A stretch of 64,000 nt of DNA, taken from sequence record OU509535.1. The stretch is one strand, 5' to 3'. Shown here piece by piece: positions 3,529 through 42,195 of this stretch (position 1 is the first letter of the stretch; each line of letters opens with the position of its first letter). The notes beneath the pieces were generated by a model that searched no databases, was not told the DNA's origin, and saw only the letters and a program-made list of their open reading frames with translations. Position numbers and translations under genes: made by a program.

Positions 3529-3774
3529 ATGATACTATCTAAAGAAGAACAACAAATTGTTGCACAAGCAATGAGTCTTTTGCACTTAACCACTGACAAA
3601 GAAAAAGATTTATTCAATCGTCTTAAAACTGGGGTTGATACAGTTCAACGTATAAAAGAGAGTAATGAACGTAAAATGAAATTCCATGCATCACTCATAG
3701 CTATGTATGGTCCAAATGCACATTTACATTATAATGATTATTATCAATACTGTGAAAAAAATGGTTTTTGGTGA
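3529..3774 (+). CDS. hypothetical protein (MILSKEE N-terminus)
   Basis: ORF track; AAGGA RBS. Confidence 0.75.
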   Translation: MILSKEEQQIVAQAMSLLHLTTDKEKDLFNRLKTGVDTVQRIKESNERKMKFHASLIAMYGPNAHLHYNDYYQYCEKNGFW

Positions 3775-3783
3775 AATAAAAGA

Positions 3784-3811
3784 TTGACAAATAACATTAG
3801 TACTGTATAAT
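3784..3811 (+). promoter_or_regulatory. sigma70-like promoter for tRNA-like RNAs 2/3
   Basis: TTGACA-16nt(ending AGTACTG)-TATAAT. Confidence 0.75.
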
Positions 3812-7206: not shown

Positions 7207-7542
7207 ATGCATATAATACTAAGTTTAGTACTTAGTACTATTTTGCTATCCTTTCTACCTGCCAGTGTATCAGCTAACAATGGTTCATTGTGCTTGTCTA
7301 ATGATGGTGAATGGTACGAAGTACGTTCCGATCCTGATAATCCAAATAACCTCACCATTGATGGTGAAGTCTTTTACATTCTACAACAACAAACCCACCT
7401 TAATAAAAAAGTCTTGACATTTAAAAGTACCAGTGGTACACTGGCATTGTTAGTTCTGGTTGGTAATCCAGAAACTAAAAAGGTTTCAATTGACATGTTC
7501 CTCACATCTGAGATAAAATCAGTTAAAATTCAATGTAAATAG
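7207..7542 (+). CDS. signal-peptide protein (CxSNDGE pair with 7919)
   Basis: hydrophobic N-terminus ending ASVSA; CLSNDGEW. Confidence 0.75.
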   Translation: MHIILSLVLSTILLSFLPASVSANNGSLCLSNDGEWYEVRSDPDNPNNLTIDGEVFYILQQQTHLNKKVLTFKSTSGTLALLVLVGNPETKKVSIDMFLTSEIKSVKIQCK

Positions 7543-9488: not shown

Positions 9489-9772
9489 TGAAAACTGTGA
9501 CAATCAAAGAAATCCAAAATAATTGGCAAGATTTAATTGAATTTAAATATAATTTTGAAGAATACAAGAAGGATACAGCGGCAAGAAATGCTTTAAATTC
9601 TGCATTTGGTTGTAAGTTAAAAGCAGCATTCTGTACTGTATATCCTGCTGTGACAGTTGATAAAACAGGCATCGATTTTGGTGCAGCACGTATTATTTTC
9701 ATTACAGAGAAAGGTGATGTAAGAATGATCTCTTCTTCTGAATGGGGTGGTATCAGTACTAAATTAAATTAA
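9488..9772 (+). CDS. hypothetical protein
   Basis: ORF track; GAGG RBS. Confidence 0.8.
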   Translation: MKTVTIKEIQNNWQDLIEFKYNFEEYKKDTAARNALNSAFGCKLKAAFCTVYPAVTVDKTGIDFGAARIIFITEKGDVRMISSSEWGGISTKLN

Positions 9773-30140: not shown

Positions 30141-30248
30141 CAGTACTGATAATAATGAATAGGAATTGATAAGAATGATTCAGTACTAATAATAATGATT
30201 CAGTACTATTCAGTACTATTCAGTACTATTCAGTACTATTCAGTACTG
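30141..30248. repeat. phased CAGTACT array; tandem 10-mer CAGTACTATT x4 plus CAGTACTG
   Basis: CAGTACT at 30141, 30181, 30201, 30211, 30221, 30231, 30241. Confidence 0.95.
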
Positions 30249-30504
30249 ATATGCCACTAAGTCCGTTTATAAAGTCGCACCCTGTGGGCTACATTTGTAA
30301 CTATTCAGTACTTAATAATTCAATTCATCAACTATTTCAAATCTAATTACCCCATTAACTAAATCCCCAAATTATATATTAGCAAAAATCCCAGTACTAA
30401 ATCAAGAAAAATCTGGATTACCAACGAGAAAAAATCTGGATTTTAAAAATTTTGAAATGTCGTTTATAGTTCAGGAAAAAAATGAAATTATAACAAGAAA
30501 ATTG

Positions 30505-30845: not shown

Positions 30846-31031
30846 AATAATAAAATAATTACAGTACTACCAATCAGTAGTACTGCTTTTAATTCAAAGT
30901 GTTTCTTTCCATAGAGAAAAGGTGCATGTAACTTGAACATGTGAACTACGGGAACAGTACTGAACAATTCCAGTACTGATTCCTCTCCAAATTTTGGATA
31001 CAATAATGCTAGGCTTCAGTTAGTACTGAGT

Positions 31032-31148
31032 GAGAATGATAATGATTCTCATTTGAATTGGATGAGAACGATTCTCATTTACTATTGAAAATGATAATAG
31101 ATTGCATTTACTAATGGTTCTCATTCGCAGATGATAATGATTCTTATT
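31032..31148. promoter_or_regulatory. tandem Fur-box-like array
   Basis: GAGAATGATAATGATTCTC (16/19 to GATAATGATAATCATTATC) at 31032 plus further boxes near 31061, 31089, 31111, 31130. Confidence 0.7.
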
Positions 31149-31281
31149 CAAAATTGATTTTTCCGATTTTTTCCATTAGTCCCCCTTCAGCGTAGGGTTA
31201 ATTTTTCCCCTGCCGAATCGGTTTTATATTTTCAAAATCTGGATTAATCATATCAGTACTAACCAAGATAAACAATACCCC

Positions 31282-31296
31282 TTTACAAATCTTTAC
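31282..31296. promoter_or_regulatory. TTTAC-N5-TTTAC (CpxR-box-like) site
   Basis: TTTACAAATCTTTAC. Confidence 0.5.
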
Positions 31297-31320
31297 AAAA
31301 AGATTCTAAATGCGAATATA

Positions 31321-31339
31321 AATGATAATGATTCTCATT
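31321..31339. promoter_or_regulatory. Fur-box-like site
   Basis: TGATAATgATTCTCA, 13/14 to 7-1-7 core. Confidence 0.7.
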
Positions 31340-31344
31340 TACAG

Positions 31345-31394
31345 TACTGAATACTTTTTCCCACGCCCTGGCGTCTCCGGTTCCTCCCGTCTAT
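31345..31394 (-). ncRNA. degenerate small non-coding unit
   Basis: minus-strand TTGACT-16-TATAAT at 31401-31428; GC-rich motif variant, no ORF. Confidence 0.35.
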
Positions 31395-31496
31395 ATAAAC
31401 ATTATACAGTACTGAAATATTAAGTCAATACTATTTTTTCAAAAAGATTAAAATAAAATACTTGCAATGCTGATATTATTATATTATAATGTTTAT

Positions 31497-31545
31497 AGTA
31501 CTGAGAAAGTGCTTTTTGCCCACTAGGGTGCTGGGGAGTATGCGT
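31497..31545 (+). ncRNA. small non-coding unit (degenerate copy)
   Basis: TTGCAA-17-TATAAT at 31462-31490; 5' hairpin; CCCACTAGGGTGC. Confidence 0.5.
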
Positions 31546-31550
31546 TAAAT

Positions 31551-31569
31551 GAGAATGATAATCATTTAC
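31551..31569. promoter_or_regulatory. Fur-box-like site
   Basis: GAGAATGATAATCATTTAC, 16/19. Confidence 0.7.
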
Positions 31570-31615
31570 AGTACTGGACGGATTTTCCCACCCTCGGGGG
31601 TCTCTTTTTGTCTAT
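31570..31615 (-). ncRNA. degenerate small non-coding unit
   Basis: minus-strand TTGATA-16-TATAAT at 31622-31649; CCCCCGAGGGTGG. Confidence 0.35.
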
Positions 31616-31654
31616 GTAGTAATTATACAGTACTGAGATACTATATCAAGTCTC

Positions 31655-31669
31655 TTTACAAATCTTTAC
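31655..31669. promoter_or_regulatory. CpxR-box-like site
   Basis: TTTACAAATCTTTAC. Confidence 0.5.
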
Positions 31670-31763
31670 AAATCACCCGGGTAGATTTATCTTTACAATA
31701 AAAGTACTTGCTTTAATCTTTCAGTACTGTTATTATATATTCATACCAAACAGGAGAACTACC

Positions 31764-31934
31764 ATGAAATACGCGTACTCTTATTTTATTGTAAACGGTG
31801 AACGTTTGACCATCGGCCAGGCTGCTGTAAAACATGAAATCATTTGCGATGATCTGGCAAAGATGCTACCAGGTGAAACGCAAGAGTTTTACAAAGGCTT
31901 TCAGAAAGTCACTGTGACCCGCTGTGAAGATTGA
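31764..31934 (+). CDS. small hypothetical protein (56 aa, not in track)
   Basis: AGGAG RBS, own promoter. Confidence 0.7.
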   Translation: MKYAYSYFIVNGERLTIGQAAVKHEIICDDLAKMLPGETQEFYKGFQKVTVTRCED

Positions 31935-31998
31935 TCCAGTACTGGGGTAGGAATACCCCTAAAACGTCCTGTAACGCATTGTAAGAGGTTTTTATAAT

Positions 31999-32226
31999 AT
32001 GGCTATAGAAGTTAACGCTGGGGATATAAAGGCGGCTGTACTGCGTACCCTGAAAGCATACGGCAGAAAGCTGAATGATCGCAACGTTCCCTATTATTTC
32101 CTTGCTGCTACTCATAAAATGGCAATAGCTGAGGCTCGCGGGTGGCTGAATGATCGCAGTACTGTAAAGAGTACCAGAACAAGAAACGCAATTGAGCGAT
32201 GGATAAAAGAATTAAATCATTTCTAA
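31999..32226 (+). CDS. small basic hypothetical protein
   Basis: ORF track; GAGG RBS. Confidence 0.7.
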   Translation: MAIEVNAGDIKAAVLRTLKAYGRKLNDRNVPYYFLAATHKMAIAEARGWLNDRSTVKSTRTRNAIERWIKELNHF

Positions 32227-32299
32227 TAGTTCAGCTAAGGGAATCAGTACTGATTCCCTGTTTAGTACTGAAATTATAAGGGGAGTTAATTAATTCCCC

Positions 32300-32314
32300 T
32301 TTACAAATCTTTAC
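32300..32314. promoter_or_regulatory. CpxR-box-like site
   Basis: TTTACAAATCTTTAC 10 bp upstream of TTGACA at 32325. Confidence 0.5.
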
Positions 32315-32359
32315 AAAAGAATGGTTGACATAGTATTCCAGTACTGGTATTATGTATTC

Positions 32360-32410
32360 ATAGACAGAACAAGTCTTTGGCCCACCGGGTGCGGAGGAGT
32401 ATCTATTAGA
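32360..32410 (+). ncRNA. small non-coding unit (conserved family)
   Basis: promoter 32325-32353; agac-agaacaa-gtct; CCCACCGGGTGC; GTATCTAT. Confidence 0.6.
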
Positions 32411-32414
32411 TTGA

Positions 32415-32439
32415 ATGAGAATGAGAATGATTTGCATTT
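32415..32439. promoter_or_regulatory. Fur-box-like site
   Basis: TGAGAATgATTTGCA preceded by extra AATGAG hexamer. Confidence 0.6.
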
Positions 32440-32444
32440 ACTGT

Positions 32445-32494
32445 ACTGAATATATTTCCGCACCCTTTTGGGCTTTTCGATTACTTTCTACTTG
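32445..32494 (-). ncRNA. small non-coding unit (degenerate copy)
   Basis: minus-strand TTGCAT-16-TATACT; CCCAAAAGGGTGC. Confidence 0.45.
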
Positions 32495-32533
32495 TTAATA
32501 AGTATACCATAATCAGTACTGAATGCAATGGTC

Positions 32534-32548
32534 TTTACAAATCTTTAC
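32534..32548. promoter_or_regulatory. CpxR-box-like site
   Basis: TTTACAAATCTTTAC. Confidence 0.5.
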
Positions 32549-32645
32549 AAAAGAAAATAATTATAAAAAGTACTGAAAAAGTACTTGACGTAATAATGTA
32601 GTACTGGCATAATGAGTACATACCAAACAGAACGGAGTAACTAAA

Positions 32646-34920: not shown

Positions 34921-35135
34921 TGGAATATGAATTAATATATCACACTCGGTTATATGTTATTTTCTTTGAAATAGCGTTATGGGGAGTAAAGGCAACGATT
35001 TATAATAAAGACGTTGCCGACGATCAAGAATGGATCGTTGTTGCAGAAGATAAAACGCCTCATGATTCGTTAAGTACTGATTTTAAATTATGCCGTGAAT
35101 TATTAAAGAGAATAAGAAAAGATAATAATATATAA
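34920..35135 (+). CDS. hypothetical protein
   Basis: ORF track; AAGGA RBS. Confidence 0.7.
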   Translation: MEYELIYHTRLYVIFFEIALWGVKATIYNKDVADDQEWIVVAEDKTPHDSLSTDFKLCRELLKRIRKDNNI

Positions 35136-35234
35136 AACAAAGGGGATCAATCGATCCCCTTTTTGCTTCAGTACTGAATTAATAATAGATACACTACGGC
35201 ACCCTATGGGTCAGTGCCTTGTGTCCGGCTTATG
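35134..35234 (-). ncRNA. complete ~100-nt small RNA gene (conserved family)
   Basis: minus TTGACT-17-CATAAT (35241-35269); gcc-ggacacaa-ggc; ACCCATAGGGTGC; GTGTATCTAT; ends in terminator 35139. Confidence 0.7.
35139..35165. terminator. bidirectional intrinsic terminator
   Basis: aaaggggatc-aatc-gatccccttttt. Confidence 0.85.
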
Positions 35235-35279
35235 TGATACATTATGCCAGTACTGCGAACATAAGTCAATAGATGATTT

Positions 35280-35294
35280 GTAAAGAAGTGTAAA
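35280..35294. promoter_or_regulatory. CpxR-box-like site
   Basis: GTAAAGAAGTGTAAA. Confidence 0.5.
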
Positions 35295-38917: not shown

Positions 38918-38923
38918 ATATTC

Positions 38924-40309: not shown

Positions 40310-40324
40310 TTTACAAATCTTTAC
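40310..40324. promoter_or_regulatory. CpxR-box-like site
   Basis: TTTACAAATCTTTAC upstream of promoter 40336-40364. Confidence 0.5.
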
Positions 40325-41717: not shown

Positions 41718-41969
41718 ATGTCAGATCGTATCACTCGCAAAATGGTAGCAGATAAAGTTGCTGGGCTGAATCTTGCTATTGACCGTCGTGGATTACCTGA
41801 AAAATATCAGGTAGTACTGGAAGATGGTAAATTCAATATTGAATTACAGCCGTCTCATGTTTATACTAATCCAAAAGTAATACAAAAGGATTTGAGTACA
41901 CGAGAAGCATATTTTTATCTGAAAGGTATGTTTCAAATTCTTCTCGACAATGTACCACATAAAGATTAA
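41718..41969 (+). CDS. hypothetical protein
   Basis: start moved to ATG after AAGGAG. Confidence 0.8.
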   Translation: MSDRITRKMVADKVAGLNLAIDRRGLPEKYQVVLEDGKFNIELQPSHVYTNPKVIQKDLSTREAYFYLKGMFQILLDNVPHKD

Positions 41970-42070
41970 AGAAAAAGGGGAGACAACAAGTCTCCCTTTT
42001 TTGTATTCAGTACTAAATTATATAGATACATTTATGCACCCTGTGGGTTAGTAGCTTGTTCTGCTTTATG
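41968..42070 (-). ncRNA. complete ~100-nt small RNA gene (conserved family)
   Basis: minus TTGACA-17-TATAAT (42076-42104); agc-agaacaa-gct; ACCCACAGGGTGCATAAATGTATCTAT; ends in terminator. Confidence 0.7.
41974..42002. terminator. bidirectional intrinsic terminator
   Basis: aaaaggggagac-aacaa-gtctcccttttt. Confidence 0.85.
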
Positions 42071-42195
42071 TAGTAATTATATGATAAAGCTGGTGGCTTG
42101 TCAACACTTATTTTAAAATAAAAAGTACTGAATAGTACTTGCAAAAAGTATTCAGTACTGTATAATGTTTATATTGAGATTAAGGAGTACTTACT

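Follow-up and report, generated by a model that had tools for sequence, protein, structure and literature searches.

Convergent RNA units around Fur-like boxes in the terminal repeat of a RaK2-like Klebsiella jumbo phage

Introduction

What role could a box resembling an operator of the host regulator Fur have when it lies between two short transcription units that run towards each other near the end of a phage genome? The question is raised by two small cassettes in sequence record OU509535.1, of which bases 1-64,000 constitute the stretch analysed here (the window; positions refer to it unless another record is named). The phage is a RaK2-like Klebsiella jumbo phage (Alcyoneusvirus), and the cassette region is 95-97% identical to RaK2, K64-1, Muenster and RCIP0023. 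A previous sequence-only reading of the window had described both cassettes as mirror-symmetric, and had suggested that DNA-bound Fur could serve as the transcription stop that defines the RNA 3' ends. We here find that the combination of convergent RNA units with a Fur-like box is real and conserved, and that it is not described in the open-access literature found.

Results

Converging units with an asymmetric centre

Each cassette consists of two converging early promoters of the sigma-70 type, each driving a two-hairpin RNA unit of ~60 nt (Table 1). All elements of the sequence-only reading, i.e. the convergent promoters, the RNA motifs and the Fur-like boxes, were recovered where it had placed them, including a further minus-strand unit starting at 31394 that runs towards a Fur-like box of its own (16/19 match at 31324-31342). 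The minus-strand promoter of cassette 2 was read by eye and was not called by the promoter scan. The promoter spacing of 160-200 bp given earlier holds for the outer promoter boxes, whereas the predicted transcription starts are ~118-135 bp apart. The Fur-like box spans about +46 to +82 of both transcripts and begins +46 to +52 from each predicted start, a position too far downstream to block initiation and one that would be suited to blocking elongation.

Of the proposed mirror symmetry, the pairing of converging units stands. The centre, however, is asymmetric, with the Fur box first and CAGTACTG second in constant order on the plus strand, the left and right arms are separate conserved subtypes (tails ...GGAGG and ...GGAAA, respectively), and the four flanking TTTAC boxes all lie on the same strand. 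None of the minus-strand arms has a U-tract terminator.

The cassettes are non-coding, since frames that begin within Fur boxes are not conserved: reading frames at the cassettes measure 27-50 amino acids in some phages, 9 in Salmonella phage Munch, and none is found in PBECO4. A 50-amino-acid hypothetical protein is annotated across cassette 1 as K64-1 gp409 and as Muenster_001 (records 3648-3800 and 1304-1456, respectively). A coding reading of this frame (31549-31701) was considered and rejected, as the frame crosses the opposite RNA unit and promoter, is shortened to 9 amino acids in Munch and is absent in PBECO4. With a start that falls within the Fur box and no conservation beyond the genus, the annotated protein is probably spurious.

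The boxes are equivalents of Fur operators by sequence

By all sequence tests applied, the boxes are Fur-operator equivalents. Scored against the 19-bp consensus GATAATGATAATCATTATC, or by the presence of at least three NAT(A/T)AT hexamers, 16/19 matches occur at 31032, 31324 and 31551, that is, three sites with at most three mismatches in the window versus 0.13 expected. The whole 347.5-kb genome contains four such sites, of which three fall inside 31032-31569 (540 bp). The centre of cassette 2 has 14/19 matches at 32417 and 32423, and weaker copies complete both this centre and a five-box array at 31030-31150. The phage hexamers are ordered forward-forward-x-reverse, as in Fur operators. A 19-bp matrix was also learnt de novo from the phage arrays and cassette centres, using segments picked by position and not by Fur likeness (consensus AATGAGAATGATTATCATT). 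On 49 kb of E. coli K-12, its top six matches all lie in the fepB-entC, fepA-fes and fepD-entS intergenic regions, which hold classical promoters under Fur control and make up 1.5% of the stretch scanned. No Fur-family gene was found in the phage genome, hence host Fur is the obvious candidate to bind these sites.

Compared with the enterobacterial operators at fepA-fes, fepB-entC and fepD-entS, the phage sites match the consensus at 16/19 positions and differ in placement: they either follow two converging starts at a distance of ~50 nt or form arrays that lack promoters, and the predicted binding would not cover a -10/-35 region. As a separate observation, a 16/19 Fur box in Erwinia phage Hallingskeid (1703-1727) overlaps the start codon of the homologue of a 56-amino-acid gene (window 31764-31934), and an early protein gene of this phage may be under Fur control as well.

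A two-hairpin RNA family restricted to the terminal repeat

The two-hairpin RNA is a real family restricted to the terminal repeat. A covariance model built from an alignment of eleven left-type units finds ten units in the window together with a marginal terminal one (E 0.22), all at 30.3-48.9 kb. Searches of whole genomes returned 10 units in this phage, 10 in Munch (Salmonella), 11 in Hallingskeid (Erwinia), 13 in GAP32 (Cronobacter) and 12 per repeat copy in CBB (Pectobacterium), and in each of the five genera searched every match is located within the ~20-kb terminal region. Comparison with Rfam gave no match at E <= 1 in 29-35 kb, and sub-threshold noise alone in 35-51 kb.

The pairing of hairpin 1 is kept through sequence change (AGAC/GUCU, AGCA/UGCU, ACCAC/GUGGU, CCUG/CAGG and GUCA/UGAC), with 37 double-change cells versus 18 +/- 3.3 in shuffles (0/500). 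The covariation score is 0.279 versus at most 0.069 for slid partners, in an alignment that was fitted to the covariance model and thus somewhat favours this structure. Hairpin 2 and the tail are conserved as sequence, with one fully compensated variant (ACGC/GCGU) at 31355-31375. The earlier assignment of one motif copy to each arm is borne out by the covariance model for three arms. The right arm of cassette 1, orthologous to the right arms of Munch, Hallingskeid and PBECO4, falls below the model threshold, as does the 31394 unit, the two having only hairpin 2 and the G-rich tail in common with the family. A copy of hairpin 2 (GCCCACAGGGTGCGAC) at 30274-30289 on the minus strand, corresponding to the marginal match, is oriented towards the predicted left physical end, ~15 nt away.

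Stand-alone members occur at 35090-35240 and 41950-42075 on the minus strand, and as plus-strand units near 38918, 40363, 44090, 47252 and 48817; none of them has a Fur box. The two minus-strand units finish in canonical intrinsic terminators and accordingly look like ordinary small-RNA genes of ~95-105 nt. The plus-strand units lie directly upstream of gene promoters and have no terminator.

A candidate protein barrier between converging polymerases

Based on the anatomy of the cassettes and on comparison with stand-alone members and related phages, we tentatively rank first a model in which a protein, in this lineage Fur, forms a barrier between the converging polymerases. As the phage DNA arrives, iron-loaded Fur would already be in the cell and would occupy the cassette operators as well as the five-box array 300 bp upstream. 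Cassette-bound Fur would then separate the two converging polymerases and do the job of the intrinsic terminator of the stand-alone members, leaving the RNAs short and non-overlapping. At low iron the operators would be free of Fur, each transcript would extend into the opposing unit, and the two RNAs would be complementary. The conserved principle would be a bound protein between converging early units, for which Fur would have been chosen in the Klebsiella, Salmonella and Erwinia lineages.

The ranking follows from the stand-alone minus-strand units, which carry a terminator where the cassettes carry the box, in conjunction with the lack of a terminator in the minus-strand arms. The proposal that Fur acts as a transcription stop further agrees with the Fur-operator sequence of a box that lies inside both units, ~50 nt from their starts. 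In addition, early promoters fire before any phage protein is made, so the acting factor must pre-exist, as Fur does.

Convergent pairs are present in all related phages listed in Table 1, with near-consensus promoters on both sides in all pairs inspected (Munch, Hallingskeid, PBECO4, CBB and GAP32). The Klebsiella phages have a Fur-like box at the centre, and so do the two cassettes of Munch (17/19 at 7434-7452) and the two of Hallingskeid. The centre of cassette 2 shows indels and length differences among close Klebsiella relatives and is still Fur-like. Across all five other lineages a central protein-type box is found in the examined cassettes, although not in every cassette. Judged from these comparisons, a protein-type box between the converging units is the rule, while its identity depends on the lineage.

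Several findings weigh against a stop made by Fur. In PBECO4, Turkey5, CBB and GAP32, GAATTTTGGRYRYAA stands in place of the Fur box, and cassette 2 of E. coli phage 121Q has no recognisable central box. With E. coli, Cronobacter and Pectobacterium relatives using a non-Fur box and cassette 2 of 121Q showing none, Fur and iron cannot be intrinsic to the cassette, and the conserved principle would be a bound protein at this spot rather than Fur itself. The plus-strand RNAs of cassettes 1 and 2 end in terminator-like hairpins with U-tracts. Five boxes form the promoter-less array, and the arrays of T5-like phages stand without these RNA units; ending RNAs can therefore not be the general role of the boxes. 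Polymerase trains from strong promoters usually dislodge roadblocks. Finally, contigs in three metatranscriptome assemblies cover 31098-31401 and so span the Fur box at 31321-31342. Should these contigs represent RNA, the box is read through; they may equally reflect DNA carry-over or be repeat-limited contigs. More broadly, the sequence occurs in wastewater, plant and gut metagenome assemblies and in three low-share metatranscriptomes as scattered low-depth contigs that hold no strand or end information, and the assembled contigs count neither for nor against expression of the cassettes.

The plus-strand ends also bear on an alternative that gives Fur no role, namely an antisense or long-hairpin RNA module. 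Here, the cassettes would yield overlapping complementary RNAs or a single two-arm stem-loop, with ends generated by RNase III processing or intrinsically, and the centre would matter as AU-rich single-stranded RNA. Such a module would resemble type I toxin-antitoxin and other antisense pairs, in that converging promoters 120-135 bp apart could yield overlapping complementary RNAs, but neither a conserved small reading frame nor an Rfam match is present. The plus transcript of cassette 2, which a U-tract follows, has a folding energy of -40 kcal/mol (z -4.35), the right arm of cassette 1 contains, when read on the plus strand, a terminator-like hairpin and T-run at 31585-31610 (a terminator-like site was called at 31585-31600), and cassettes without Fur boxes exist. 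On the other hand, the left and right arms do not co-vary for pairing and shuffled sequences fold as well as cassette 1 does (z -1.6 and -0.6), for which reasons long-range pairing of the arms was rejected as a selected feature. Moreover, the U-tract of the plus arms is not kept in Munch, Hallingskeid or PBECO4, and the central boxes are repeated protein-type motifs that also occur outside the cassettes in promoter-less arrays. An antisense module is hence regarded as unlikely.

The protein-barrier model has precedents in roadblock repression by DNA-bound regulators, which is established for CodY and CcpA (as cited in PMC4324032). As in systems of the CodY, CcpA and LacI type, the regulator site lies downstream of a promoter and inside the transcribed region. 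The phage arrangement differs in that one site is predicted to serve two converging units and to define the 3' ends of small RNAs, for which nothing described was found in the open-access literature.

The other box type and its distribution are relevant to the identity of the barrier. GAATTTTGGRYRYAA recurs upstream, beside an iteron-like array of GGCTAGAT / GACGGCTAAA that occupies the place of the Fur array; the type was located in PBECO4 (1100-1300 and 1420-1720), in CBB (640-810 and 1040-1062) and also in GAP32. Relatives with GAATTTTGGRYRYAA and GGCTAGAT-type iterons at the same positions are what would be anticipated for co-evolving pairs of phage protein and site, and could thus point to a protein encoded by the phage or carried in the virion. 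In that case the boxes would resemble Fur operators by mimicry or coincidence. The preference of the phage boxes for GAGAAT over GATAAT half-sites would agree with this. We nevertheless consider a phage protein quite unlikely, given the failure to find a Fur-family gene in the phage, the activity of early promoters before any phage protein, the presence of the same boxes in unrelated phage families that have only Enterobacterales hosts in common, and the selection of true E. coli Fur operators by the phage-derived matrix.

Fur-like arrays at genome ends in this phage and in T5

The cassettes lie close to a genome end. In Muenster, a direct terminal repeat (DTR) of 20,030 bp was determined by PhageTerm, the first base of which maps to ~30260 of the window; the 19,736-bp PhageTerm repeat of fENko-Kae01 has an identical start, and the terminal repeat of CBB measures 22.5 kb. 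The G+C content climbs from 0.27-0.30 to 0.34-0.39 across 30-50 kb of the window. The cassettes are placed 1.2-2.3 kb inward from the left DTR end, in a ~2.3-kb stretch without credible genes. Directly before this end, TTCAGTACTA is repeated five times in tandem (30190-30248). These tandem copies are formed by the palindrome CAGTACTG, which is present 101 times in the window versus 0.6 expected, at 3.1 per kb within the terminal repeat versus 0.9 per kb outside. CAGTACTG also occupies the spacers of early promoters, where it provides the extended -10 TG, and trails the Fur boxes; its AGTACT core is reminiscent of the SlmA-binding site.

Promoters near genome ends that serve no protein-coding gene are known from T7, where phiOL and phiOR lie near the physical ends of a genome with direct terminal repeats. 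The cassettes are alike in these respects, but the T7 promoters serve the phage polymerase, do not converge and lack a site for a host regulator.

The five-box array is retained in Muenster, K64-1, Munch, fENko-Kae01 and Hallingskeid, and in BLAST searches it matched 232 phage records, including many T5-like and phAPEC8-like phages and others. In T5, the match falls within the injection-stop signal as annotated (AY692264.1 ~9535-9715), which is situated at the inner end of the left terminal repeat and where ~six Fur-like boxes stand beside the known DnaA boxes, and all T5 sites with at most three mismatches from the Fur consensus are within the terminal repeats. Arrays of 4-6 Fur-like boxes are present in T5 and at equivalent places in other T5-like phages, further records with such arrays being bastian, AAS21 and tuntematon, and one phAPEC8-like phage has an array with TTTAC-N5-TTTAC ~100 bp away. 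The injection-stop signal, or Repeat Region 3 of the left terminal repeat, has been described as comprising repeats, palindromes and DnaA boxes (Davison preprint, 10.1101/866236), in a text that never mentions Fur. No mention of the Fur-like arrays of T5 and its equivalents was found in the open-access literature, nor any paper in which Fur is connected with the terminal repeats of phages or with T5 first-step-transfer DNA.

These observations allow for an explanation at the DNA level like that suspected for the T5 region; we place it close behind the barrier model and consider it possible, if on balance not probable. In this case, the eight Fur boxes (array and cassette centres) would recruit host Fur into a nucleoprotein complex at the repeat boundary that acts on DNA, either by pausing or pacing entry as in T5, by marking the boundary for end processing or packaging, or by keeping the AT-rich leading DNA unsilenced; the convergent RNA units would be independent neighbours. 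The spread of the array over several unrelated phage families, its location in the T5 injection-stop signal and the confinement of T5 sites to terminal repeats speak for such a landmark. So do the lack of promoters on either side of the 31030-31150 array and the presence, in relatives with the non-Fur box, of iteron-like arrays in this location. In Munch, six of seven sites with at most three mismatches from the Fur consensus (four of five distinct positions) are found in the first 7.5 kb of 350 kb. In T5 as well as in this phage, the array is less than 1 kb from one physical end and at the junction of repeat and unique sequence in the other copy.

The likeness to T5 has limits. Both are virulent enterobacterial phages with a long, conserved, non-coding stretch, rich in repeats, palindromes and boxes for host factors, in a long direct terminal repeat. 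However, T5 has paired DnaA boxes, whereas no TTWTNCACA is present at 30-33 kb here; the 347.5-kb genome contains nothing that matches the T5 genes A1 and A2 at E <= 1, in a search that had no positive control and is weak; the two-hairpin RNA unit is absent from T5; and the T5 array marks the inner end of the left repeat, that of the jumbo phage being 0.8 kb from the left end. Without DnaA boxes and A1/A2 homologues, what is common to T5 is the Fur-like array and not the T5 machinery, and this counts against a landmark that works as in T5. Two-step injection is, moreover, not reported for RaK2-like phages in the open-access literature found, and a landmark would leave unexplained why boxes are placed exactly between converging promoters in several genera.

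The clustering of many strong boxes could also be taken as a Fur sponge, in which ~8 boxes per repeat, with two repeats per genome, would titrate Fur on replicating DNA. Host iron uptake and the Fur-controlled ribonucleotide reductase would then be derepressed, which would favour the synthesis of phage DNA. Multicopy Fur boxes do derepress the Fur regulon in the classical Fur titration assay. A sponge accounts neither for boxes placed precisely between converging promoters or at the repeat boundary nor for E. coli relatives without Fur boxes, and derepression would set in late for sites positioned so early; we deem it very unlikely.

TTTAC repeats and further features of the region

The outer boxes of the cassettes had been taken for CpxR-like edges. 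TTTAC-N5-TTTAC is indeed enriched, with six copies in the window versus 0.62 expected (four in Table 1, the others at 35280 on the minus strand and at 40310), five being identical copies of TTTACAAATCTTTAC and one a variant. The arrangement, however, is not mirror-symmetric: the repeats lie 7-8 nt upstream of the left-type -35, but 5 nt away from, and inverted relative to, the right-type promoters, so that their position and orientation relative to the promoters are not consistent. Their single orientation indicates that they belong to plus-strand promoters and are not symmetric edges. The sequence matches the CpxR consensus, a direct repeat GTAAA-N5-GTAAA, and fits OmpR-type TTTACA direct repeats (10-bp spacing) equally well. 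Similar boxes precede other left-type units, and an identical sequence precedes the left promoter of cassette 2 in 121Q. Overall, the TTTAC boxes look functional.

A scan for tRNA and tmRNA returned none, and the GC skew, inspected for a replication origin in view of the divergent and convergent promoters and iterons, shows no switch. The small genes between and after the cassettes have no Pfam match. The Fur array is separated from the first RNA unit by a non-coding element (31160-31255) made up of a T-rich part and a C-rich hairpin followed by AATCTGGA; the element is recognisable in Munch, Hallingskeid, PBECO4 and CBB, though its surroundings have diverged by ~30%. Wastewater contigs join 31430 to 31706, i.e. 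without cassette 1, or 31730/31752 to 32232/32237, i.e. without two small genes. By these junctions, cassettes and genes behave as modules that are exchanged at repeated promoters.

Table 1. Features of the cassette region in the window and convergent pairs in related phages (record coordinates).
Sequence	Feature	Position	Strand	Basis or remark
Window	Fur-like array, promoter-less, ~5 boxes	31030-31150		consensus scan, 3-5 mismatches of 19; ~800 bp from left physical end
Window	TTTAC-N5-TTTAC direct repeat, left of half-cassette	31282-31299	+	motif scan
Window	Fur-like box (31324-31342, 16/19) then CAGTACTG	31318-31349		downstream of minus unit starting ~31394
Window	Half-cassette: promoter TTGACT-16-TATAAT (31428-31401; 11/12) and right-type RNA motif	31350-31428	-	promoter scan; hairpin read from sequence
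Window	Cassette 1 left arm: promoter TTGCAA-17-TATAAT (31462-31490; 10/12), RNA unit 31492-31555	31462-31547	+	covariance model E 3e-9
Window	Cassette 1 centre: Fur-like box (31551-31569, 16/19) then CAGTACTG	31548-31576		consensus scan
Window	Cassette 1 right arm: promoter TTGATA-16-TATAAT (31649-31622; 11/12), right-type motif	31577-31649	-	promoter scan
Window	TTTAC-N5-TTTAC direct repeat	31655-31672	+	5 nt outside cassette 1 right -35; 33 nt upstream of next gene promoter
Window	TTTAC-N5-TTTAC direct repeat	32300-32317	+	7 nt upstream of cassette 2 left -35
Window	Cassette 2 left arm: promoter TTGACA-17-TATTAT with TG (32325-32353; 11/12), RNA unit 32354-32416	32325-32411	+	covariance model E 3e-16
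Window	Cassette 2 centre: three-hexamer Fur-like box (32412-32442, 14/19) then CTGTACTG	32412-32450		weaker version
Window	Cassette 2 right arm: weaker promoter TTGCAT-16-TATACT (32528-32501), right-type unit	32451-32528	-	covariance match 32435-32501(-) E 4e-5
Window	TTTAC-N5-TTTAC direct repeat, outside cassette 2 right promoter	32534-32551	+	motif scan
Munch	Convergent pairs	976/1114, 7377/7509		record coordinates
Hallingskeid	Two convergent pairs
PBECO4, Turkey5, 121Q	One or two convergent pairs
GAP32	Convergent pairs	3763/3883, 6592/6712, 22872/22993
CBB	Convergent pairs	982/1102, 3791/3913, 20813/20934

Discussion

The sequence comparisons presented here make the Fur roadblock proposed for the two cassettes a plausible mechanism, which is partly supported by comparison and is not universal. 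A still broader reading, which we consider doubtful, joins the arrays and the cassettes: Enterobacterales phages with long terminal repeats would co-opt host Fur as a landmark on the first-entering DNA, with arrays pacing or arresting entry and single operators acting as shared terminators. The phages concerned would be large virulent ones of the T5-like, the RaK2-like and probably the phAPEC8-like groups, and host iron status would then be coupled to the onset of infection.

The T5 injection-stop mechanism has been open for decades. If the arrays bind Fur, this region would have a named host factor, and a second, unrelated phage group would possess an element comparable to that of T5. For the jumbo phages, the genome end where annotations put spurious small proteins holds a conserved non-coding programme, in which a new terminal-repeat-restricted RNA family is combined with convergent cassettes and host-regulator sites. 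If the barrier model is true, a host transcription factor acting as a bidirectional stop between converging RNA genes would represent a new use of roadblocks. As RaK2-like Klebsiella phages are candidates for phage therapy and infected tissue is iron-limited, an iron-dependent early programme would matter there.

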